The notes under the pieces were generated by a model. That model was not told where the DNA came from. It did no database searches and was given only the letters and a program-made list of their open reading frames with translations. Positions 11,977-64,000 of a stretch of 64,000 nt of DNA are shown one piece after another (position 1 is the stretch's first letter; the number at the start of each line of letters is the position of its first letter). Location of the stretch: the IMG/VR virus record IMGVR_UViG_3300044701_003953, positions 1 to 64,000 of that record. One strand, given 5' to 3'. The position numbers and the translations under genes are program-made.

Positions 11977-11989
11977 AGTAGTGTATTTA

Positions 11990-13558
11990 TCAACTCATCA
12001 TTATAAAGGGCATGGGCTCGATGTAGTCATCTAGGCTATCGCGCATTTTTTCATCTAAGTTAGCATCAAATCCCTGTAGCAGTTGTATCATGCGTAGGGC
12101 TAATACTAAGGCCATAACCAAGTCATCGGTTTCCCCGGGCTTGGCCGCAAAGCTCATACCGTGTGCTACAAATCCTTTGAGCTCAGTAATCAAGTTCTTG
12201 CTAGTGAGTGTGATACGTTTGTTTTCTATCAGAGTTTTGAGTTTAGCGCAAGCAGTAAGTTTGGGCTTGTGAGTGGTGTTGAATCCTTTGCGGAAGCGTC
12301 GCACATTTCCGCTTCGCCCGGGCTCGCTAAGGAAAGTGCCTCGTATGTTTTCCTCGCCTACTTCGGCGATGCTGACCAGTCCTGCCTCGCCTAAAGTATT
12401 GTTTTCCAGGCTGTAGTAGATGTCGTTTTCGCTGCCGGTGATACTATAAATGTAGTCGGCAATCTCTCGTAGTATAGCGATCTGTCGCTGGATCACTGTC
12501 TTGTTGTGTTTCCATTCAGCTACCTGTATCATGGACGGGATTTCTACTACTTGGATAGCGGCGTTGTCGCCTCCGGTGCCTAGGCTGGGATCCAGTGCTA
12601 TCACATATTGCTGGCCAGGCTCGGGTCGTTTATACCAGCGCACCTGTCCTTGTTTCTCCAGTGGATCACGCCCTTCCAGTTCCATGAGATGTATAGCCGA
12701 GATCAATGTCTCGTCGTAGATCACCGGTTCGCATTCGTGCTCTCGTTTGAAACGCTCTTCACCAATACTGGAACGCTCTTGGTTGGCCCATACTTCGTCG
12801 CGATCGGGATGACGGTTCCATTTAGCCATGTAGCCTTTGAAACCGTTCTCGCCCAACTCGCGCTGGTTACCGTATTCGTCCTCAGTCCTGTTAGCGGCAC
12901 GCCATAACATCCAGAACTGATCCTCGTCGGAGTTGGGGGTAGAAGTGATTATCGCTTTACCACCAGTAGCCAGCGTCGGTGATATAGAAGTCCAGAACTC
13001 TTTGGCGATAGAGTTTCGCACGAACGCGAACTCGTCAGCGTACAGGAGCGTGATGGACATACCCCGGCCTGTTGTTTCTGTGGTAGTGGCAGAAACTATG
13101 CGGCTACCATTTTCAAAGTCTATGCTGCCTTTGTTATAACTTACCACACCCGCACGGATGAAGTCAGGACACAACTCATAGGCATATCTGATACGTTGCA
13201 TGATCTCCTGGGCACCAGTGTATTTGTGCGCGGCGATCAGGATAGTAGAGTCGGGACGGAACATGGCATACCATAACAGATATCCTGCGGCTGTGGTGGT
13301 CTTACCCATCTGTCGTCCCAGCAGGTTGATACTGAATCGATGATTGTGATAGACGTCGATCAGTTCGTCTTGATAGTCAAAAGGCTGATACAGCATGCGG
13401 CCTTTGACAGGATGCTGTATGTAGAAATAGTTACCCAGGAAGTATTTAGGGCCCGTGGCGGGATCGGCACACCGAGCGAACTCGACGATCTGTTCATTGG
13501 TATATTTTTCTTTGCGGTGTGCGGGTTTGACCAGCACGCCTTCGAGACTCTTGGACAT
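11990..13558 (-). CDS. gp17: Terminase large subunit (gp17)
   Basis: GRQMGKTT Walker A, LLYADEFAF Walker B, ITSTPN, ALDPSLG nuclease motif, DDLVMA. Confidence 0.95.
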   Translation of the reverse strand: MSKSLEGVLVKPAHRKEKYTNEQIVEFARCADPATGPKYFLGNYFYIQHPVKGRMLYQPFDYQDELIDVYHNHRFSINLLGRQMGKTTTAAGYLLWYAMFRPDSTILIAAHKYTGAQEIMQRIRYAYELCPDFIRAGVVSYNKGSIDFENGSRIVSATTTETTGRGMSITLLYADEFAFVRNSIAKEFWTSISPTLATGGKAIITSTPNSDEDQFWMLWRAANRTEDEYGNQRELGENGFKGYMAKWNRHPDRDEVWANQERSSIGEERFKREHECEPVIYDETLISAIHLMELEGRDPLEKQGQVRWYKRPEPGQQYVIALDPSLGTGGDNAAIQVVEIPSMIQVAEWKHNKTVIQRQIAILREIADYIYSITGSENDIYYSLENNTLGEAGLVSIAEVGEENIRGTFLSEPGRSGNVRRFRKGFNTTHKPKLTACAKLKTLIENKRITLTSKNLITELKGFVAHGMSFAAKPGETDDLVMALVLALRMIQLLQGFDANLDEKMRDSLDDYIEPMPFIMMS

Positions 13559-13573
13559 GCTAGTATTTAAGGA

Positions 13574-13792
13574 TTATTTCTTGCCGAAGGGATTTTCGCC
13601 CGTGAGTTTGGGGCGAGCGAACCAAAGTTTAAACCAGTCATCGGTGCCGGGCTGTATCTTGTGCTTTTTCATGTGCGCAACTTTTTCGGCCGCGGTATGT
13701 GTGATGTTCCCACTGACAGAATGGTCAACGGTGTCTTTAGGATAGACACCGCGACCAACTCCTGCTAGATGTTTAAGTTCTTCTAAAGTCAT
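13574..13792 (-). CDS. Hypothetical protein (72 aa)
   Basis: Operon-coupled; N-terminal LKHLAGV motif. Confidence 0.7.
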   Translation of the reverse strand: MTLEELKHLAGVGRGVYPKDTVDHSVSGNITHTAAEKVAHMKKHKIQPGTDDWFKLWFARPKLTGENPFGKK

Positions 13793-55890: not shown

Positions 55891-56625
55891 ATGCGAGTAG
55901 CCATAGTAACACCAACTATTGGGAGTAAAAATCTCAAAAAATGCATAGAAAGCGTGCAGACACAGATCTATACTAAAGTCAAACATTATATCTTTGTTGA
56001 CGGCGCCGACCACGAAGACTCGGTCAATGCCATCATTGAAAATGCTCGTATGTTTGATGTTCCGGTAGCCGTCTCTACATTAGCTGAGAATACTGGAGGC
56101 AATGGATGGTATGGTCATCGAGTATATGCGGCGTGCGGATTTTTAATTGATGCTGATGTAATATGCTACCTCGACGAAGATAACTTCCTTGAACCAAATC
56201 ATGTATTAGACCTAATAACCGTAATGGAAAATCAAGAACTTGATTGGGCGTATTCGTTAAGGAAAATCGTTGGTCCAAGTGACAACATTATCTGTCGTGA
56301 CGAATGCGAAAGTCTCGGAAAATGGCCAACTTATGTGGGAGAGAATGTGTTCCATATCGACACATCTTGCTTCATGGTCAAGCGAGACATCGCTACTACA
56401 ATCGGGCATGCATGGTATTTTCAATGGGGAGCCGACCGTAGATTTTTAGCGGCACTAAAACATTACTTTCCAAAATTTGATACTTCAGGTAGCTACAGCC
56501 TCTGTTATCGATTAGGCGGTAACGAAGGATCTGTGACAGAAGATTTTTTCCACGAAGGCAATCGTATCATGTCTGAACGATATCCATCTGGATTCCCGTG
56601 GGATCGTAGCGCATTAGAATATTAA
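55891..56625 (+). CDS. Glycosyltransferase family 2 (GT-A fold)
   Basis: IVTPTIG, IFVDG, CYLDEDN (DxD-like), IDTSCF. Confidence 0.8.
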   Translation: MRVAIVTPTIGSKNLKKCIESVQTQIYTKVKHYIFVDGADHEDSVNAIIENARMFDVPVAVSTLAENTGGNGWYGHRVYAACGFLIDADVICYLDEDNFLEPNHVLDLITVMENQELDWAYSLRKIVGPSDNIICRDECESLGKWPTYVGENVFHIDTSCFMVKRDIATTIGHAWYFQWGADRRFLAALKHYFPKFDTSGSYSLCYRLGGNEGSVTEDFFHEGNRIMSERYPSGFPWDRSALEY

Positions 56626-56629
56626 AAGA

Positions 56630-56651
56630 AAACCGCCCCATAGGGCGGTTT
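56630..56651. terminator. Bidirectional terminator between GT2 and amt
   Basis: aaaccgccc-cata-gggcggttt flanked by A and T tracts. Confidence 0.8.
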
Positions 56652-56672
56652 GTTTTTAGTCGAAAAGAACTA

Positions 56673-57896
56673 CTATTTGACTGATTGACGGAACTCAGGA
56701 TAAGCGATGAGTCCACACTCTTCCATGTCAGAACCTTCGTGTTCCTCTTTGGGAGAGACACGCAAGCCCATGACAGCTTTGATGATATACCAAACGATCA
56801 AGCTAGTGATGAACACCCAAGCGAAAATCACGGCAGCACCGTAGGCCTGGGTCAGGAACGATCCGGCTTTGTTGGTCAATGGCACTGCTAACAGTCCCCA
56901 TAGTCCAGCTACACCGTGTACTGAGATAGCACCAACTGGGTCGTCGATTTTGAAAATACGATCTAAAGTCAGGATGGATGCGTAGCAGATCAAACCACCG
57001 ATAGCACCGATTGCCGTAGAGGCGATGGCAGTGCCTGTGAGTGGTTCAGCAGTGATTGACACCAATCCAGCCAAAGCACCGTTTAGCGCCATGGTGATAT
57101 CTGACTTGCCTGTAAACAGTTTACCAGCGACTAATGCCGCTAACAAACCACCCACAGCAGCCATGTTGGTGTTGACGAAGATCTGTGCCACAGCGTTGGC
57201 GTCAGCGAACGTGCTCATCTTCAGTTGTGAGCCACCGTTGAAACCAAACCAACCAAACCACAGGATCCATGTGCCCAGGGCCACCAGTGTGATGTTTGAA
57301 CCTTGGATAGCACGTGGCTTACCATTGGGTCCATACTTGCCTTTTCTAGCACCCAGCAGGATCACACCTGCAAGGGCAGCGGCAGCACCGGCCATGTGTA
57401 CCACGCCTGAACCTGCGAAGTCCAGGAAGCCAGCAGCGTCAAGAGCGCCTTTGCCCCACTTCCAGAAACCTTCCACTGGATAGATGAAGCCAGTCATCAC
57501 TACTGCGAACAACAGGAAGCTCCACAGTTTCATGCGCTCGGCCACTGCTCCCGACACGATGCTCATGGCAGTTGCCACGAACACTACCTGAAACCAGAAG
57601 TCCGACAGTTTGCTGTAGTAAGCGTCGGCAGCGGGTTTGGCATGATCGCCTGCGACCAGGAAATCAAAGCCCGGGATCCACGAACCTTTGGCTCCGCCGT
57701 ACATGATGTTGTAGCCTACGAGTAGGAACATCAAACAAGCGATGCCGTAGAGCGCAAAGTTTTTAGTGATGATCTCTGAGACGTTCTTGGTGCGGACCAT
57801 ACCTGCTTCCAGCATGGTGAAACCTGCGCCCATGAACATGACCATGGCGCCCATGACTAGGAAGTAAAACGTATCTAAGCTATATGCTAGTTCCAT
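56673..57896 (-). CDS. amtB: Ammonium transporter (Amt family)
   Basis: AGFTMLEAG, DFAGSGVVH and ISVHGVAG (twin His), WFGWFGFNGGS, NGALAGLVSIT, IDDPVGA; start trimmed to MELAYSLDT. Confidence 0.93.
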   Translation of the reverse strand: MELAYSLDTFYFLVMGAMVMFMGAGFTMLEAGMVRTKNVSEIITKNFALYGIACLMFLLVGYNIMYGGAKGSWIPGFDFLVAGDHAKPAADAYYSKLSDFWFQVVFVATAMSIVSGAVAERMKLWSFLLFAVVMTGFIYPVEGFWKWGKGALDAAGFLDFAGSGVVHMAGAAAALAGVILLGARKGKYGPNGKPRAIQGSNITLVALGTWILWFGWFGFNGGSQLKMSTFADANAVAQIFVNTNMAAVGGLLAALVAGKLFTGKSDITMALNGALAGLVSITAEPLTGTAIASTAIGAIGGLICYASILTLDRIFKIDDPVGAISVHGVAGLWGLLAVPLTNKAGSFLTQAYGAAVIFAWVFITSLIVWYIIKAVMGLRVSPKEEHEGSDMEECGLIAYPEFRQSVK

Positions 57897-57897
57897 T

Positions 57898-58939
<1,042 letters not shown>

Positions 58940-59096
58940 AGTTGAATTACCTTTCTGCTGATACTCTTGATCAGCGTTGATGTCCAGGGTACTCCTGACC
59001 CTTGACACTAATATATATATAGCAGAGCACAATATCAGTGTGTGTTTTGTAGTATTTTTGTCATGGACATATAGATTTATGTCGTTAGCGACGGAC

Positions 59097-59126
59097 AATA
59101 AAAAACCGCTGCCAAAGACAGCGGTT
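59097..59126 (-). terminator. Terminator after the 64-aa gene
   Basis: Minus aaccgctg-tctttgg-cagcggtt followed by a T tract. Confidence 0.75.
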
Positions 59127-59146
59127 CTAGTCCAAGATACGCGAGA

Positions 59147-59341
59147 TTACTTCTTAGCGTCAGCTTTCTTTTCAGACTTAGCGTCAGCTTTCTTTTCAGA
59201 CTTAGCGTCAGCTTTCTTTTCTTCTTTTTTGGCTTCTGCTTTAGCAGGAGCGGCAGCAGGAGCTGCGGGTGCTTTGGCCGCATCGGCAGCAAACACCGAT
59301 GTAGCAATACCCATCATCAGGGCGGCAACTACGTTTTTCAT
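59147..59341 (-). CDS. Small secreted Lys/Ala-rich protein (acid-shock-protein-like)
   Basis: Signal peptide MKNVVAALMMGIATSVFA; KKADAKSE repeats. Confidence 0.7.
   Translation of the reverse strand: MKNVVAALMMGIATSVFAADAAKAPAAPAAAPAKAEAKKEEKKADAKSEKKADAKSEKKADAKK
59153..59221. repeat. 24-bp tandem repeat, about 2.9 copies
   Basis: cttagcgtcagctttcttttcaga repeated exactly. Confidence 0.9.
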
Positions 59342-59454
59342 TTTGAATTTCCTTTAAAAGAAACTACTCACGTGGTGTAGTGAGACCATCTCACTACTGT
59401 AAATATTTACGCTTAAGATTTTACGCCCAAAAAGAAACCGTCCAATTTGACGAA

Positions 59455-60456
59455 TCAGATTATCTCTACGAGGTTCTCGCGGAATATCTTCCAGCACGAT
59501 TCCCAACTCCACTGTTGGCTAGCTTGTTCAACTCGGTCTCTGGGATAGCCCAAGCAGATACGGGCAGATTCTGTGAGATCTTCGCTCATGTGCCCTGTGA
59601 TGCCGTTTTCCAAGATATCAATGGGGCCAGGTACAGGATAGGCTGCCACCGGAGTGCCCATAGCCAATGCTTCAATGATCACTATACCAAAAGTATCAGC
59701 ACGACTGGCAAACACAAACACATCGGCGTTGGCATAGTAGCGTGCTAGATCCGTACCACGCAAGGCTCCCACAAACTCGATGCTGGGATAGCGAGATTCA
59801 AGTTCTTGACGGTAAGGACCGTCGCCAACCACTATCTTCCTGGCACCTGGTATGTCGATCTCGCAGAAATCATCAAGACCTTTTTCTCGAGACACTCGGC
59901 CCACGCTCAACAGAACAGGTGGTCCCGATTCCTTGGATCGCATGCGATGATCAAAGATGTTGCGATCCACACCGCGTGTCCAGGCTCGGATGTCGCCGCG
60001 GAAGCCATGCTCTTTTAATTCTCTCACCATAGTGTCGGTTGTTGTAAGCACACGACCCGAATGCTTGTGGAACCAACGCAGATAAGCATAAGTGATCCAA
60101 GCAGGAACACCGTAGATCTTTTTCAAGAACTCGGGGAATTTGGTATGGTAGGAAGTGTTGTAGCGATAGAAGTGGCTGTCTAACCACCACCGCGCCGCGA
60201 AGCCAATTGGGCCTTCCGTAGCGATGTGTACATAGTTCGGATCAATCTCTTGGATCTTGTCACCAATGCCCTTGGGCCAACTAAGCCGAACTTCAGGATA
60301 ACCAGGAGCGCCACGATTAGGGAACTGCCGGGGATCAATATAAAAGATATCGTAGCCGTCGCGACGAGCATGTATTTCCAGATTCTGGAAAGTAGTGACC
60401 ACACCGTTGATCTGCGCAGGGTCATTGTCGGTTATGATGAGGATTTTTTTTCGCAT
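59455..60456 (-). CDS. GT-B family 4 glycosyltransferase, Agt-like (diacylglycerol glycosyltransferase)
   Basis: QINGVVTT, HIATEGPIG, YHTKFPEF, WTRGVD, VGRVSREK, DTFGIVIIEALAMGTPV; directly behind plcP. Confidence 0.85.
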   Translation of the reverse strand: MRKKILIITDNDPAQINGVVTTFQNLEIHARRDGYDIFYIDPRQFPNRGAPGYPEVRLSWPKGIGDKIQEIDPNYVHIATEGPIGFAARWWLDSHFYRYNTSYHTKFPEFLKKIYGVPAWITYAYLRWFHKHSGRVLTTTDTMVRELKEHGFRGDIRAWTRGVDRNIFDHRMRSKESGPPVLLSVGRVSREKGLDDFCEIDIPGARKIVVGDGPYRQELESRYPSIEFVGALRGTDLARYYANADVFVFASRADTFGIVIIEALAMGTPVAAYPVPGPIDILENGITGHMSEDLTESARICLGYPRDRVEQASQQWSWESCWKIFRENLVEII

Positions 60457-60525
60457 GAGTGTACTATCTTGTAGCCGCGATAGCGTATGTCGTACCGCAT
60501 GGATGCGACTGCCTGTTCGCAGACT

Positions 60526-61365
60526 TCACGACTGGGCAGATCCATTTGTATCGTTGCTGGTCGATCTTGGGGATTTGTAAGGCTTACTGCTACTAGTATC
60601 AGTGTCCACATCGTCGTGCTCTTTGGTCCAGGTCACTATCTCCCAGCGACCGTCGTAGTGTTCGACAAGGGCAGTCATTGATTCCACCCAATCTCCATCG
60701 TTCATGTATGTGACGCCGTCTATTTCTTTGATCTCAGCGTGATGTATGTGTCCGCAGATAACACCATCAAAGCCACGCTTCTTACAGTATGCGGCAAGGT
60801 TCTTTTCAAATTGAAATATGAAGTCTATGGCTTTTTTCACACGTCCTTTGAGATACTTACTCAACGACCAATAACCAAATCCCATGCGATGTCGTATCCA
60901 ATTAAACTTGCTGTTTAACATCAACACAAAGTCATAGGCCTTGTCGCCTAAAAAGCTGATCCATGGGGCTAGTCTAGTGATACCATCGAAGAGATCACCG
61001 TGTGTGACTAGATAGTGCCGTCCATCTACACCTATGTGTTCGCACTGATTGACCACTTCAATATTGCCAAAGTTGATGCCGTAGGGCATGAGCGGTCTAA
61101 GGAATTCGTCATGATTACCAGCCACATATATGACTCGTGTGCCACGCTTGGCATGACCCATGACACGTCGTACTACATTGGTATGGCTTTGTTTCCAACG
61201 CCATTTGTTTTGCTGTATCCTCCAAGCATCAATGATATCTCCTACTAGGTAAAGCGTTTCACAGGTATGATGTTTGAGGAAGTTGTTTAATTGATTGGCT
61301 TTACAGTCCCGCGTACCAAGATGCACATCAGATATGAATATAGATCTGTAAGTTTGTTGCGGCAT
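60526..61365 (-). CDS. plcP: PlcP-type Mn-dependent metallophosphoesterase (LpxH-like phospholipase C)
   Basis: FISDVHLG, LVGDIID, GNHDE, HGDLFD, YWSLS, CGHIHH, NDGDWVES. Confidence 0.8.
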   Translation of the reverse strand: MPQQTYRSIFISDVHLGTRDCKANQLNNFLKHHTCETLYLVGDIIDAWRIQQNKWRWKQSHTNVVRRVMGHAKRGTRVIYVAGNHDEFLRPLMPYGINFGNIEVVNQCEHIGVDGRHYLVTHGDLFDGITRLAPWISFLGDKAYDFVLMLNSKFNWIRHRMGFGYWSLSKYLKGRVKKAIDFIFQFEKNLAAYCKKRGFDGVICGHIHHAEIKEIDGVTYMNDGDWVESMTALVEHYDGRWEIVTWTKEHDDVDTDTSSSKPYKSPRSTSNDTNGSAQS

Positions 61366-61419
61366 AACAAATATTTACTCTTTCTGCTTTGCGACAAATA
61401 ACTTACTATGACCGTTTCA

Positions 61420-61917
61420 TTACAAGATCCGCATATGCGGATCTATCGCTTTCGCTATTCGCTCAGCGATGTTTTTTCTAAATTAGAACTATTGTTTGTT
61501 TTTAAGTATCATCCAGATTAAGCAGCCACACTTCGCCCCTTGCGGGGCGAAAAAGGTTTTACTAGCATCATCCGAGTAGCACAACCACTTAGCGTTGGAA
61601 CTATGATTGACTATATTTTAATATAAACAATCGCGCAGGCGGTCATCCGGTACCTGCTCATCCCGTCTTCCTATGACGGCGGGGTCTACGACATACGCTA
61701 ACACATCGCAGAGCCGTGTGAGTATCGTTGTAATCTCACATCTTTTAGCCTTGATAAAAGAACATTTGTCTTACAGCGAAACCAGTTGATAAAGGCATAT
61801 CTGGTCATCGTCCTGTCAAGGATAGTCGCTGTATGCTCGCGGCGGCGGCGAGACTTCGGTCCCCGTGATCCAAAGATCCGGTTATCGTCGGCACCCGATG
61901 TTGGCCGGTGCTAGCCT
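61420..61917 (-). ncRNA. Candidate large structured non-coding RNA downstream of the GIY-YIG gene
   Basis: About 500 nt with no ORF of 60 aa or more, at least 8 local hairpins, long-range complementarities and a GCAA tetraloop. Confidence 0.55.
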
Positions 61918-62367
61918 TTACTCGCTGATGATATTTTTAAGTTTGCCCTTGATGTGGGAGCCATGTACACGGACTTGTATGTGTCCGTTATAGTATTCGT
62001 TGGATTCTAAGACTTGGTGTCGGAATTGTTCTCTTGCTTCGATGTAACTGCATTCGGCCTTGCTGTAACAGTAATAGAGTATCTCCCTGGTAAAGTTTTC
62101 GGGACCTAGCGTTTCTACATCTCGGTTTAGTTCGTCGTTTGAGCCATAATAAGTCTGCCAGTCTGAATCGATTTTTGATTTGATGCGTTTTTTCTTTTTA
62201 GTGCCATTCTTCAGTTTAACAGTTCGATAAGTGGTTTTTGAGAATTTTGCCAGTTTTTTGCCTATGTATTTCCTACCTGATACTCGATTCGTGATGAGAT
62301 AGACGAAGCCTACACAATCGTCGGGCAAAGATTCTACGGGTGAGTTCTCGAAAAGCCACATGGACAT
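61918..62367 (-). CDS. Single-domain GIY-YIG endonuclease (Seg-like)
   Basis: GFVYLITN...KYIGKK, YYGS, conserved E (YIEAREQ) and YYN. Confidence 0.8.
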   Translation of the reverse strand: MSMWLFENSPVESLPDDCVGFVYLITNRVSGRKYIGKKLAKFSKTTYRTVKLKNGTKKKKRIKSKIDSDWQTYYGSNDELNRDVETLGPENFTREILYYCYSKAECSYIEAREQFRHQVLESNEYYNGHIQVRVHGSHIKGKLKNIISE

Positions 62368-62391: not shown

Positions 62392-62862
62392 TCATAGATT
62401 TTTTTCGTAGATCCAGCCAAGATGTTCGGTTTCGTGTATCCAGGTGTAGATGGGAAACGTCACGGGCAACACCCATTCTCCGTTCCAACCTAGGTAATCA
62501 CCGCGGATCGCGGGTTCTAACACTATGCCTTGCTGTTCGCAGGTTCTGCGATATGCTTCAGGATAACGCGGATAGTATAAGGCCTGCTGACGGAAACTGT
62601 CAAAATTCATGCCTTCGAACCCGATACCTTCTATGATCACGGCCTTGTCGAGATCCTGTTCGACTACTGTATCGCCGTCCCTTTTGTTGTAGAACTCCAC
62701 GACCAAGAGATGGTCTCCATGTCCTCCGGAGACATCAAAAGTCTTGACGTGGTGATGATCGAGCTCGCCGCGGAACAATACTTGATCGTCCCAACGGATT
62801 TCGATCTCGGGATAGTCGTCCCACCATACGGGTTTTAGAGTGATATCAATGACGGTATCCAT
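62392..62862 (-). CDS. Hypothetical protein coupled to a radical SAM gene
   Basis: Overlaps the radical SAM stop by 17 nt. Confidence 0.65.
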   Translation of the reverse strand: MDTVIDITLKPVWWDDYPEIEIRWDDQVLFRGELDHHHVKTFDVSGGHGDHLLVVEFYNKRDGDTVVEQDLDKAVIIEGIGFEGMNFDSFRQQALYYPRYPEAYRRTCEQQGIVLEPAIRGDYLGWNGEWVLPVTFPIYTWIHETEHLGWIYEKNL

Positions 62863-64000
62863 ATATCCTTAACCAATCTGTTGCTTCAGGTAAAAAATCT
62901 TCGACGGTCTTGTCGTGGAGCTCATCCTGCTCGCTGAGCCTAGCAGCCATATCTCGGCGTAGTTCATCGGCTCCTGCCGGTTCAGGTCTCCGCAAGTGTC
63001 GTATCAACGCTTCTGCTTCGTTCTTTAATGTGATCTCGACGTTGTTGGGATTCTTGGTATTGTTGAATCTTTCACCTTGTATCTGTATGCTGTCTGCGAA
63101 ATCCTGTAAGTGCTGTATAGTATATGCTTTGAGATCCTCGGGCAAGAGATCTGACAACATCCATCTTGGACGATTTGGGTAGCTGGCATCGATGGGGATA
63201 CGACGATCCAGGGCGTGTTTCAGTAGCGTGTGGTATCTTAATACTGATAATGCTGTAGGTACTGTACGGAAAGTCCATTGTACTTCTGGCATAGCATCTC
63301 TCATATCATCCACATTACGCAGGATCTGTGTGATGTCTGCGCCTTGCCGCAGATAATCGTTGGCACGGTCTGCTGTTTCGATGCTGACGCCAATCTCTAC
63401 TCGTTTGAAGATACGCAAGAGATCATGATATTTTGAGTAGTTGATACTACCGTTGGTAGTGAACGACAAGTTTAACCAAGTCATCTTTTTGTCGGCAAAC
63501 ATCTTCAGCAGATCTCGGAAACGCTCAATGAGTTCAGGTTCTCCGCCGATGATGTGTACTACACGAACCGACTCGTAATTTACATCGAACCAGTCAACGA
63601 AACGCTGCCAAGCCACCGGATCCTGCGTCCATGGCTCTAACTTGTAGTCGATAGGAATCCATCCCATCTTCCGTTGATCTTGTGCCACACGGCTAGATGC
63701 TTCGGGCGGACAAAACTTACAGCTGAAATTACAAGTGGTACCGATGTTGAGATGTAGGCTGGCTATGCGGGTAACAGTCTCTCCGTCGTTGTTGGCGCTG
63801 TAATCAAAATACCCTTTGTGCGGACTCTGCTCAAAACTACGGTCAAACTGTCGCTGGAAGATCACCGACTTGAGATTTTCTTTCTGTCTCGCAGATGTAT
63901 AACCGGCAGCATCTTTCATCTGGCACATGCGGCACATAGGATCCACGGTATCACCTAATTTGATCCTGCGCTTTTCCCGCATGCGACTGCTGTTCCAATA
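62846..64000 (-). CDS. Radical SAM protein, 5'-truncated by the window edge
   Basis: CNFSCKFC, IIGGEP, FTTNG; the frame is open to position 64000. Confidence 0.85.
   Translation of the reverse strand, partial: YWNSSRMREKRRIKLGDTVDPMCRMCQMKDAAGYTSARQKENLKSVIFQRQFDRSFEQSPHKGYFDYSANNDGETVTRIASLHLNIGTTCNFSCKFCPPEASSRVAQDQRKMGWIPIDYKLEPWTQDPVAWQRFVDWFDVNYESVRVVHIIGGEPELIERFRDLLKMFADKKMTWLNLSFTTNGSINYSKYHDLLRIFKRVEIGVSIETADRANDYLRQGADITQILRNVDDMRDAMPEVQWTFRTVPTALSVLRYHTLLKHALDRRIPIDASYPNRPRWMLSDLLPEDLKAYTIQHLQDFADSIQIQGERFNNTKNPNNVEITLKNEAEALIRHLRRPEPAGADELRRDMAARLSEQDELHDKTVEDFLPEATDWLRIYGYRH

Follow-up and report, generated by a model that had tools for sequence, protein, structure and literature searches.

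Organization of the gene pair

Two adjacent minus-strand genes, encoding an LpxH-like metallophosphoesterase (plcP-like) and a GT4 glycosyltransferase (agt-like), lie within a T4-like jumbo phage contig from a freshwater metagenome (Table 1). The window, the whole 64,000-nt stretch analyzed, is the first 64 kb of IMG/VR virus record IMGVR_UViG_3300044701_003953 (207,520 bp, 59% complete). The esterase matched Pfam Metallophos and Metallophos_2, and the second product matched Glyco_transf_4 plus Glycos_transf_1; a weak GT4-conflict hit (21.9 bits) fell below its cut-off of 26. The absence of a predicted terminator or TAAATA between the genes suggests that they are probably co-transcribed. The sequence-only reading had described an esterase with PlcP-type motifs directly upstream of a GT4, behind TAAATA six bases before the ATG, and this observation is confirmed.

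Table 1. Features of the locus and its downstream context (window coordinates)
Position	Strand	Feature	Details
61408-61424	-	Pho-box-like tandem repeat	TGTAAT-gaaac-GGTCAT; one mismatch to the clade pattern TGT[AC]A[TC]-N5-TGT[AC]A[TC]; 43-59 nt upstream of the esterase ATG; 30 nt from TAAATA
61372-61377	-	TAAATA hexamer	Six bases before the ATG; may be the -10 element of a promoter giving a nearly leaderless mRNA, or a T4-type late promoter core
60526-61365	-	plcP-like gene	LpxH-like calcineurin-type metallophosphoesterase, 279 aa
60457-60525	-	Intergenic spacer	69 nt; no terminator or TAAATA found
59455-60456	-	agt-like gene	GT4 glycosyltransferase (GT-B fold), 333 aa
59438-59453	-	Terminator-like hairpin plus T-run	Immediately after the GT4 stop; probably the end of the two-gene unit
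59147-59341	-	Small secreted Ala/Lys-rich peptide	Start of the downstream co-directional cassette (56673-59341)
59102-59128	-	Terminator-like hairpin	
58247-59098	-	TorF/Gcw_chp porin ORF	Signal peptide starting at about 58939
57898-58236	-	glnK	
56673-57923	-	amt	Marine subtype
56630-56651	-	Terminator-like hairpin	Follows amt

The genes are truly phage-borne. Portal, major head protein, baseplate hub, tail tube and terminase genes lie to the left, and a family-B DNA polymerase and PhoH lie to the right. Contigs from runs of two samples tiled positions 56000-61950 with no differences and at even depth. Host inference gave no assignment: Amt was about 40% identical to the Amt of five freshwater betaproteobacterial genomes, while its best named cellular relatives (66-70%) were mostly Gammaproteobacteria. 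No tRNA or tmRNA was found in the window or the rest of the genome, whereas relatives carry a beta-type permuted tmRNA.

The minus-strand sequence upstream of the esterase reads GAGTAAATA-TTTGTT-ATG. This placement of TAAATA is more than chance, as the hexamer ends 5-7 nt before the ATG of 12 of 212 predicted genes of the 207.5-kb genome, against 0.16 expected from its genome-wide frequency. Genes with the same arrangement include the large terminase and a virion protein. The "late-type" promoter proposed by the sequence-only reading is possible but not shown, since AGTAAATA matches the T4-type late consensus TATAAATA at only 6 of 8 positions. All four exact TATAAATA copies in the window lie in the structural-gene region, three of them in gaps between genes.

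Family placement of the predicted enzymes

The esterase does not cluster with true LpxH, the outcome that had been named in advance as refuting a PlcP assignment. It scored 47.9 and 35.9 bits on the two NCBIfam LpxH equivalogs, below cut-offs of 134 (NF003743) and 190 (TIGR01854), while true LpxH from Pseudomonas scored 338 and 345 bits. NCBIfam contains no PlcP or Agt model. Five bacterial genomes hold both a true LpxH (213-338 bits) and a paralogue (38-54 bits) that the phage protein resembles. In a tree, the five LpxH sequences were separated from all 98 PlcP-like rows by the longest branch (support 100). The 23 viral rows formed one clade (97) inside the PlcP-like group, sister (97) to a gammaproteobacterial set that includes Pseudomonas. 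Motif III is GNHD in the window protein and GNH[DE] in all 98 PlcP-like rows, but GNRD in all five LpxH rows. The metal-binding residues D13, H15, D43, N84, H85, H122, H206 and H208 are all in place, and were invariant in 62- and 66-sequence alignments. The structural model (pLDDT 87.2) has a predicted LpxH-like fold with a helical insertion at residues 128-196, between motifs IV and V, and a disordered C-terminal tail of about 30 aa after about residue 250. The top 25 PDB matches were all LpxH (17-21% identity, TM 0.5-0.6), and Swiss-Prot structure searches likewise returned only LpxH.

Operon context was examined next in the 80 closest bacterial loci, at 48-58% esterase identity. About 50 have a GT4 directly downstream on the same strand, 36-45% identical to the phage GT4. 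This is the "type 2" plcP-agt neighbourhood of PMC4796936, whose supplement lists Caulobacter, Polynucleobacter, P. aeruginosa and Thiomicrospira among carriers, identified by BLASTP (E < 1e-40) against MED193_17359. The 48-58% homologues occur in Caulobacteraceae, Pseudomonas and Thiomicrorhabdus; the first two, and Thiomicrospira, the classification under which related strains appear, are on that list. Assignment of both proteins therefore rests on operon context, this genus-level overlap and published motif descriptions, rather than on comparison with a characterized PlcP or Agt sequence.

The GT4 carries every published Agt/GTcp signature residue. H104, T160/R161, D254 within FASRADTFG (249-257), GRVSREKG (186-193), W318 and the N-terminal QINGVV motif (15-20) correspond to GTcp H104, T162/R163, D256 within FPSxTDTFG, GRVAxEKN, W320 and the Gly-rich motif. 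These include the catalytic dyad His104-Asp256, with Asp in place of the usual GT4 Glu, and the diacylglycerol-contacting residues Thr162, Arg163 and Trp320. H104 is invariant, as is W318 in 30 sequences. The model (pLDDT 92.6) has a predicted GT-B fold with two Rossmann-like halves. Eight of its nine best reviewed structural matches (TM 0.81-0.90) are glycosyltransferases that act on diacylglycerol-based lipids or inositol phospholipids: SQD2, mycobacterial PI-mannoside mannosyltransferases, related GDP-mannose alpha-mannosyltransferases and alpha-monoglucosyl-DAG synthases. The Agt/GTcp clade is delimited by 35-58% identity within it and under 25% to other GT4 enzymes; without a characterized Agt among the comparisons, identity was 37-45% to bacterial GT4s encoded downstream of plcP and 14-25% to reviewed GT4s of other function. 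Asp is not general among the phages, as 30 of 38 viral GT4s have Glu here. The specificity of that subclade may differ, given that the D256E mutant of GTcp lost more than 90% of its activity. Values of dN were 0.10-0.15 for the esterase and 0.30-0.40 for the GT4; dS was saturated in both, so dN/dS ratios are not given.

Viral relatives and Pho-box-like repeats

Three clade-level findings are new here. First, at least 582 IMG/VR contigs encode a relative of the esterase, and thousands of metagenome proteins are known. Second, among 82 viral loci examined, the esterase is followed directly by the GT4 (38 loci) or by a GT2 (42 loci), never both; one locus has too little sequence downstream and one has neither, giving 80 of 81 with enough sequence. 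Third, Pho-box-like repeats followed by TAAATA precede the esterase, pstS and one unknown ORF. pstS is adjacent to the esterase in 13 of 80 loci and in phage Mosig; this frequent neighbour and the repeats upstream of the esterase and pstS strengthen the phosphorus link at clade level. A second, unrelated metallophosphoesterase occurs in the same phages.

A scan with the E. coli Pho-box consensus CTGTCAT-N4-CTGTCAT gave only chance-level 11-of-14 matches (15 observed, 18.6 in shuffles). The clade-specific pattern emerged on inspection of sequence upstream of pstS in relatives. Of 50 strict repeats in 1.79 Mb, about 46 lie within 150 nt upstream of the esterase, pstS or the conserved unknown ORF. 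TAAATA-N4-8-ATG precedes the esterase in 42 of 82 relatives, and exact tandem repeats lie 11-12 nt upstream of TAAATA in 25 of 82 loci by the strict pattern. This is the geometry of a PhoB-dependent promoter, although binding by any PhoB is inferred from sequence alone. In the window the single box is degenerate and displaced, but occupies the position of exact copies in relatives. Only 12 matches with at most one mismatch, none of them exact, occur in the whole 207.5-kb genome (0.003 expected per 100 nt). pstS was not found in the 207.5-kb record, which is incomplete, so absence from the phage is not shown. No public RNA run was found to hold this DNA. Lake metatranscriptome assemblies held only short fragments of relatives' esterase genes, 80-90% identical; with DNA carry-over not excluded, we do not count these as evidence of transcription.

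Inferred lipid remodelling, alternatives and related systems

We propose, with a probability of about 0.6, that the two genes are a phage copy of the bacterial PlcP-Agt membrane-lipid renovation operon. In this view, the esterase would act during infection as a PlcP-type phospholipase C, cutting the phospho-head group off host glycerophospholipids to leave diacylglycerol. The Agt-type GT4 would then transfer glucose or glucuronate from a UDP-sugar onto the diacylglycerol, keeping the bilayer intact with phosphorus-free glycolipids. Released phospho-alcohols would enter host metabolism and supply phosphorus for replicating a genome of about 340 kb. As PlcP releases phospho-alcohols rather than phosphate, further host enzymes would be needed to make the phosphorus usable. 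Both gene trees are consistent with the pair having been captured once as an operon from a proteobacterium, and in this view it has been kept under purifying selection in a widespread clade of freshwater T4-like jumbo phages. The module would there behave as part of a phage-borne Pho regulon. Our analysis establishes family placement, synteny, signature residues, predicted folds, the regulatory motif and the distribution. Phospholipase C activity, synthesis of MGlc-DAG and/or GlcA-DAG, all substrates and products, PhoB binding, timing of expression and benefit to the phage are inferred, and substrate specificity in this family is known for only a few members.

The interpretation in the sequence-only reading is partly supported. 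Its core, a PlcP-type esterase plus Agt-type GT4 on a phage, held in every test we could run. Its claim of "phage rather than PhoB control" is doubtful in light of the repeats in relatives and the one-mismatch copy in the window. The proposed combined nitrogen-plus-phosphorus island is not conserved: adjacency to porin-glnK-amt is real here, but was seen near the esterase in only 1 of 80 related viral loci. Phosphorus mining and envelope alteration, both suggested there, remain inference.

A more tentative extension is that this clade, and more distantly some pelagiphages and cyanophages, carries its own small Pho regulon. It would comprise pstS, a plcP-type phospholipase coupled to a GT4 or GT2 glycosyltransferase, and the unknown ORF, each behind a Pho-box-like operator plus TAAATA. 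Infected, phosphorus-starved cells would be made to strip phosphorus from their own membranes and rebuild them with glycolipids, making membrane phospholipid a virus-mobilized reservoir. Part of the heterotroph-derived glycolipid signal in phosphorus-poor waters would then be virus-driven, and genes counted in viromes as "lpxH / LPS biosynthesis" would in fact be phosphorus-scavenging genes. By rough arithmetic, a small cell's membrane holds a few million phospholipid molecules. This is of the same order as the phosphorus in its chromosome, and equals several copies of a 340-kb phage genome at about 0.68 million phosphorus atoms each. We found no paper describing plcP as a phage gene, nor any containing both plcP and "auxiliary metabolic genes", and papers on Mosig and on pelagimyophages do not mention the gene. 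Re-reading these common genes, at present filed as LpxH/LPS genes in phage records and virome surveys, would change how viral gene inventories from lakes and oceans are interpreted. The conserved operator-plus-TAAATA architecture also offers a handle on how these uncultured phages sense host phosphate status.

The best-surviving alternative, which we consider unlikely, retains the same biochemistry but places the benefit in a changed envelope. This could block adsorption or entry of competing phages, change how membrane proteins behave, or stabilize the membrane until lysis. Published work links lipid renovation to changes in membrane proteins and to phage attachment in Pseudomonas and Ruegeria (PMC9804370; PMC9938194), and pelagimyophage glycosyltransferases have been read as surface modifiers (PMC7029224). 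In this window the pair also lacks an intact Pho box and may use a TAAATA signal shared with structural genes. The clade-wide association with pstS and Pho-box-like operators nevertheless points to phosphate starvation as the condition that matters, although the two benefits are not mutually exclusive.

Less likely still, the esterase may have no lipid-replacement role. It could weaken or consume the membrane, or act on another phosphodiester or pyrophosphate substrate, while the glycosyltransferase modifies LPS, a protein or DNA. The generic GT2 of unknown acceptor in half of the relatives, the second metallophosphoesterase and the inferred status of the substrates leave room for this. Against it stand the direct coupling to a glycosyltransferase, the diacylglycerol-contacting residues and predicted fold of the GT4, and the same gene order in bacteria where the pathway has been shown experimentally. 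Defence-system models (PADLOC) gave no hits for either protein.

We regard as very unlikely that the esterase is LpxH and the GT4 an LPS or cell-wall glycosyltransferase, together forming a lipid A / LPS module. JGI names the relatives "LpxH" and "glycosyltransferase involved in cell wall biosynthesis", GenBank names the Mosig and S-SRM01 homologues as the hydrolase/diphosphatase, and viromics papers list viral lpxH under LPS biosynthesis. The equivalog scores, paralogy, tree and motif III described above all argue against this. A chimeric assembly joining host DNA to a phage contig is extremely unlikely: although the amt-glnK-porin cassette looks cellular and the assembly graph breaks inside amt/glnK where related sequences are present, depth is even, phage genes lie on both sides, an identical GT4 lies on a 339,769-bp contig, and hundreds of viral contigs carry relatives while no cellular genome exceeds 58% identity.

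Characterized members of the bacterial PlcP-Agt pathway are Sinorhizobium meliloti SMc00171, Phaeobacter sp. MED193 MED193_17359, SAR11 HTCC7211 PB7211_983 and PB7211_960 (GTcp), Agrobacterium Agt atu2297, and P. aeruginosa PA3219 with PA3218 and PA0842. Gene order is the same, and identity to operon-linked bacterial homologues (48-58% for the esterase, 37-45% for the GT4) is comparable to the 41-47% reported between characterized members. The GT4 matches GTcp in length (333 versus 334 aa). The phage module differs in its lytic-type T4-like jumbo phage carrier, its own viral clades (support 97 and 100), the degenerate, displaced box, the disordered esterase tail, Glu in most viral GT4s, and replacement of the GT4 by a GT2 in half of the relatives. 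LpxH shares the calcineurin-like fold with a helical lipid-binding insertion and is the nearest solved structure, but is only 16-21% identical, and the phage protein was never found here in a lipid A gene context.

The "putative UDP-2,3-diacylglucosamine hydrolase" of Pelagibacter phage Mosig EXVC030M (QOI69083.1) and that of Synechococcus phage S-SRM01 (QPX48289.1) are homologues (48.5% and 36.5% identity) that group with the viral clade. Both sit on long branches, and neither has an adjacent annotated glycosyltransferase. The processive glycosyltransferase Pgt (GT21) lies downstream of plcP in Mesorhizobium and Agrobacterium, among the neighbourhoods with other glycosyltransferases described in PMC4796936. 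The GT2-superfamily gene that takes the GT4 slot in phage relatives has a weak Glyco_transf_21 hit but could not be assigned to Pgt/GT21. It is short (238 aa), its best curated hit is an arsenosugar-type GT2 far below cut-off, and no homologue was found downstream of plcP in the 80 bacterial loci. Finally, cyanophages and pelagiphages carry the phosphate-stress genes pstS, phoA and phoH, with Pho-box control reported for cyanophage pstS (Zeng and Chisholm 2012; Sullivan et al. 2010). These too are host-derived Pho-regulon genes on T4-like phages, but import or release external phosphate or have unclear roles, whereas the pair described here would mobilize an internal pool, the membrane phospholipid, and replace it.

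Genomic setting of the gene pair

The window is the first 64 kb of an IMG/VR virus record that is 207,520 bp long and is rated by CheckV as 59% complete. An identical GT4 protein is recorded on a 339,769-bp contig, and close relatives lie on contigs of 317–379 kb. The phage is therefore a jumbo phage of roughly 340–380 kb. A portal, a T4-type major head protein, a baseplate hub, a tail tube, a head-tail adaptor and the large terminase lie to the left of the gene pair, with a family-B DNA polymerase and PhoH further right in the genome. The DNA comes from freshwater metagenomes.

Two minus-strand ORFs, a metallophosphoesterase and a GT4 glycosyltransferase, are separated by 69 nt. A terminator-like hairpin follows the second gene, and TAAATA sits six bases before the ATG of the first. 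The sequence-only reading had described this arrangement, and its observation was confirmed as written. Its interpretation, a PlcP-Agt pair behind a late-type signal and forming an island with nitrogen genes, was partly supported. Features of the window, of the phage record and of related loci are collected in the table.

Locations of the gene pair and of other features in the window, in the 207.5-kb phage record (G000) and in loci of related phages (L handles)
Feature	Location	Strand	Description
LpxH-like esterase gene	window 60526-61365	-	279 aa; Pfam Metallophos and Metallophos_2
GT4 glycosyltransferase gene	window 59455-60456	-	333 aa; Pfam Glyco_transf_4 plus Glycos_transf_1
Small overlapping ORF	window 60432-60611	-	59 aa; hydrophobic N-terminus
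Pho-box-like repeat	window 61424-61408		TGTAAT-gaaac-GGTCAT
RNA motif	window 61771-61916	-	Rfam Polynucleobacter-1 (RF01718)
Homing endonuclease	window 61918-62367	-	SegE-type GIY-YIG; Pfam PF19835, 115.9 bits
Radical SAM protein	window 62846-63982	-	next to the gene pair
amt-glnK-porin cassette	window 56673-59341	-	amt (marine subtype, TIGR03644), glnK, TorF porin, 64-aa secreted peptide
TAAATA before an ATG, examples	window 13559-13575; window 11977-11995		the first before the terminase
Second metallophosphoesterase	G000:C1:205812-206603	-	no curated family match
Second metallophosphoesterase, relative	L148:9224-10072		40% identical to the G000 protein
GT2-family glycosyltransferase	L127:2598-3314		238 aa; also at 41 other viral loci
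Conserved ORF	L127:3349-4047; L148:7999-8652		217–232 aa; homologues in L003, L119 and L160
Permuted tmRNA	L006:13857-14225; L100:3266-3644		two-piece, betaproteobacterial type; also in L108, L116, L126 and L136
csgF, csgG, FecR-domain protein, CHASE2-guanylate cyclase	L003:2130-3437; L006:1859-3203; L003:12620-14674		close to the pstS-esterase-GT4 block

The nitrogen genes form a cassette downstream on the same strand, in which the small Ala/Lys-rich repeat peptide gives a weak Asr-like hit. The adjacency to the esterase is real, but any of these genes was seen near the esterase in only 1 of the 80 closest IMG/VR loci. The proposed nitrogen-plus-phosphorus island is thus a feature of this genome's variable region and not a conserved unit. 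Amt is 75–94% identical to metagenome proteins on contigs of up to 192 kb, which are probably phage, and at most about 70% identical to cellular Amt, mostly of Gammaproteobacteria. Viral amt and glnK have been described before (PMC8115048).

Upstream of the esterase, the RNA motif is a full-length match (102.5 bits against a gathering score of 37) that starts right after the stop of the segE-like gene and lies about 400 nt from the esterase. It is the only Rfam match in the 64-kb window and was not found in 11 related loci. The motif was described from Burkholderiales and freshwater/estuary metagenomes, so part of that record may be phage DNA. Homologues of the homing endonuclease just upstream of it sit at variable positions near the esterase in 8 of 80 relatives, in keeping with a mobile, variable region. 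The radical SAM protein has about ten distant paralogues (21–29% identity) scattered over the 207.5-kb record, including a cluster at 106–113 kb. The small ORF overlaps, in another frame, the poorly conserved 3' tail of the esterase gene and the GT4 start.

Family placement of the esterase and the GT4

Clustering of the esterase with true LpxH had been set beforehand as the outcome that would refute the PlcP reading, and it was not observed. Against the two NCBIfam LpxH equivalogs the protein scored 47.9 and 35.9 bits, where the cut-offs are 134 and 190. Five bacterial genomes holding a close homologue of the phage protein were next searched with the LpxH model. Each has a true LpxH at 213–338 bits, and four of the five also showed the homologue as a second, weak match at 38–54 bits, the range in which the phage protein scores. 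In a maximum-likelihood tree of 103 sequences, the five LpxH were split from all 98 others by the longest branch (support 100). The 23 viral sequences formed one clade (97) nested among the bacterial paralogues and sister (97) to a gammaproteobacterial group containing Pseudomonas, Nevskia and Thiomicrorhabdus, with the homologues of phages Mosig and S-SRM01 attached to the viral clade on long branches. The third phosphoesterase motif is GNH[DE] in all 98 paralogue rows and GNRD in all five LpxH rows. All metal ligands are present. The AlphaFold model (pLDDT 87.2) has the LpxH-like core plus a helical insertion at residues 128–196; LpxH entries were its 25 best PDB matches, but only at TM 0.5–0.6 and 17–21% identity. 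The protein is thus an LpxH-like lipid phosphoesterase, as predicted from sequence and model, of a different orthologous group.

We infer from gene neighborhood and published carriers, rather than from comparison with the experimentally characterized sequences, that this group is PlcP. Among the 80 closest cellular loci (48–58% identity; Alpha-, Beta- and Gammaproteobacteria), about 50 have a GT4 directly downstream on the same strand, 36–45% identical to the phage GT4. This is the "type 2" plcP-agt neighborhood described by Sebastián et al. (PMC4796936). The supplement of that paper lists Caulobacter, Polynucleobacter, P. aeruginosa and Thiomicrospira as plcP-agt carriers, and P. putida as a plcP carrier with agt elsewhere in the genome, which matches our Caulobacteraceae loci (GT4 present) and our Pseudomonas loci (no adjacent GT4). 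For scale, characterized PlcPs are 46–47% identical to one another (PMC8528852).

The GT4 was compared with the features by which Wei et al. (bioRxiv 10.1101/2021.03.25.437072, published as PMC8231724) define the Agt/GTcp clade: a His104-Asp256 dyad with Asp replacing the usual GT4 Glu, the motifs GRVAxEKN and FPSxTDTFG, a Gly-rich motif, and the diacylglycerol-contacting residues Thr162, Arg163 and Trp320. The enzyme studied there is 334 aa long. The phage protein has a similar length (333 aa) and carries H104, GRVSREKG, FASRADTFG (D254), QINGVV, T160-R161 and W318. Most of these positions are invariant in an alignment with bacterial plcP-linked GT4s. Its three best NCBIfam hits, all far below cut-off, are lipid-linked glycosyltransferases: GlcN-phosphatidylglycerol synthase, the LTA glycolipid-anchor transferase IagA/BgsA, and alpha-monoglucosyl-DAG synthase. 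The nine best reviewed structural matches of its model (pLDDT 92.6) lie at TM 0.81–0.90. Eight of them are enzymes that glycosylate diacylglycerol-based lipids or inositol phospholipids, namely plant SQD2, mycobacterial PI-mannoside mannosyltransferases and related GDP-mannose alpha-mannosyltransferases, and two alpha-monoglucosyl-DAG synthases.

Distribution in related phages and Pho-box-like repeats

Both proteins have thousands of close metagenomic relatives, at 78–85% identity among the listed hits for the esterase and 66–75% for the GT4. No cellular genome exceeds 58% identity for the esterase, and the close relatives are therefore viral; at least 582 IMG/VR contigs encode one. In 82 viral loci the esterase is followed directly by the GT4 in 38 and by an unrelated GT2-family transferase in 42, never by both, while one locus has too little sequence downstream and one has neither. 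In 80 of 81 informative cases the esterase is thus coupled to a glycosyltransferase, as one expects if its inferred product, diacylglycerol, must be glycosylated. The GT2 could not be assigned to a known lipid transferase. The viral GT4s are monophyletic (100) and split into a group of 8, including that of the window, which keeps Asp, and a group of 30 with Trp-Glu at that position. Both gene trees place the viral clade next to the same gammaproteobacterial lineage (loci L010 and L020). This is consistent with a single capture of the operon, although that remains inference. dN is 0.10–0.15 for the esterase and 0.30–0.40 for the GT4 with synonymous sites saturated, which indicates purifying selection.

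Permuted tmRNA genes lie within a few kb of the esterase in some relatives and hint at betaproteobacterial hosts; none was found in the 207.5 kb of this phage. The curli secretion genes csgF and csgG of relatives echo those reported in pelagimyophages. A second metallophosphoesterase, unrelated to the first, lies in L148 just downstream of the esterase-GT4 block. That it might process the phospho-head groups is pure speculation.

The gene pstS lies next to the esterase in 13 of the 80 closest IMG/VR loci, in the contigs L003–L005 and in phage Mosig. Upstream of those pstS genes we found tandem direct repeats with 11-bp spacing: TGTAAT, TGTCAT or TGTAAC, then five bases, then the same again. 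The strict pattern occurs 50 times in 1.79 Mb of viral loci. About 30 copies lie 26–146 nt upstream of the esterase ATG on the coding strand, about 10 lie upstream of pstS, and 6, in six related phages, lie upstream of the conserved ORF of 217–232 aa. This ORF has no Pfam or NCBIfam match and is not present in the 207.5 kb of this phage; it may be a third member of a phage Pho regulon. The usual layout is repeat-N5-repeat, 11–12 nt, TAAATA, 4–6 nt, ATG; examples with an exact box lie in the 60 nt upstream of the esterase in L123 and L128. This is the geometry of a PhoB-dependent promoter, in which the Pho box replaces the -35 element about 10 bp upstream of the -10. By this reading TAAATA, taken as late-type in the sequence-only reading, would at clade level be the -10 element of a Pho-box promoter that gives a nearly leaderless mRNA.

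In the window itself the box has one mismatch and stands 30 nt from TAAATA rather than 11–12 nt. Only 12 such near-matches, and no exact match, exist in the whole 207.5-kb genome, so a chance occurrence in that spot is unlikely (0.003 expected per 100 nt). Its function is nonetheless doubtful. TAAATA ends 5–7 nt before the ATG of 12 of 212 predicted genes (0.16 expected) with no Shine-Dalgarno sequence in between, and a second peak lies at 19–21 nt with AGGA between the motif and the ATG. This suggests a class of leaderless or nearly leaderless transcripts in this phage. The terminase and a virion protein are preceded by TAAATA-N5-7-ATG without boxes, and one relative (L006) has ATAAATA-N5-ATG before its esterase. 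A late-type signal therefore remains possible for this particular phage, and the two readings may coexist.

Proposed mechanism and relation to known systems

Our analysis establishes the family placement, operon structure, signature residues, predicted folds, selection, distribution and operator motif, whereas the biochemistry is inferred from the characterized bacterial pathway. In this view, the esterase would cleave PE, PG or PC to diacylglycerol plus a phospho-alcohol, and the GT4 would make glucosyl- or glucuronosyl-diacylglycerol from UDP-sugars. It is a further inference that the released phosphorus feeds phage DNA synthesis. By rough arithmetic, a 340-kb genome needs about 0.68 million phosphorus atoms, and a small cell's membranes hold a few million phospholipids. 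A changed envelope that hinders competing phages is a plausible additional or alternative benefit. A chimeric join with host DNA was set aside, since phage genes lie on both sides and contigs from runs of two samples tile 56000-61950 without a single difference and at even depth.

No paper mentioning plcP together with auxiliary metabolic genes was found, and phage records and virome surveys call these genes LpxH or list lpxH under LPS biosynthesis. The enzymes and the pathway are known from bacteria, and phage phosphorus genes under Pho-box control are known from cyanophages. New here are the presence of the predicted pathway on phages, its near-obligate coupling to a glycosyltransferase, its scale, and its apparent place in a phage Pho regulon.
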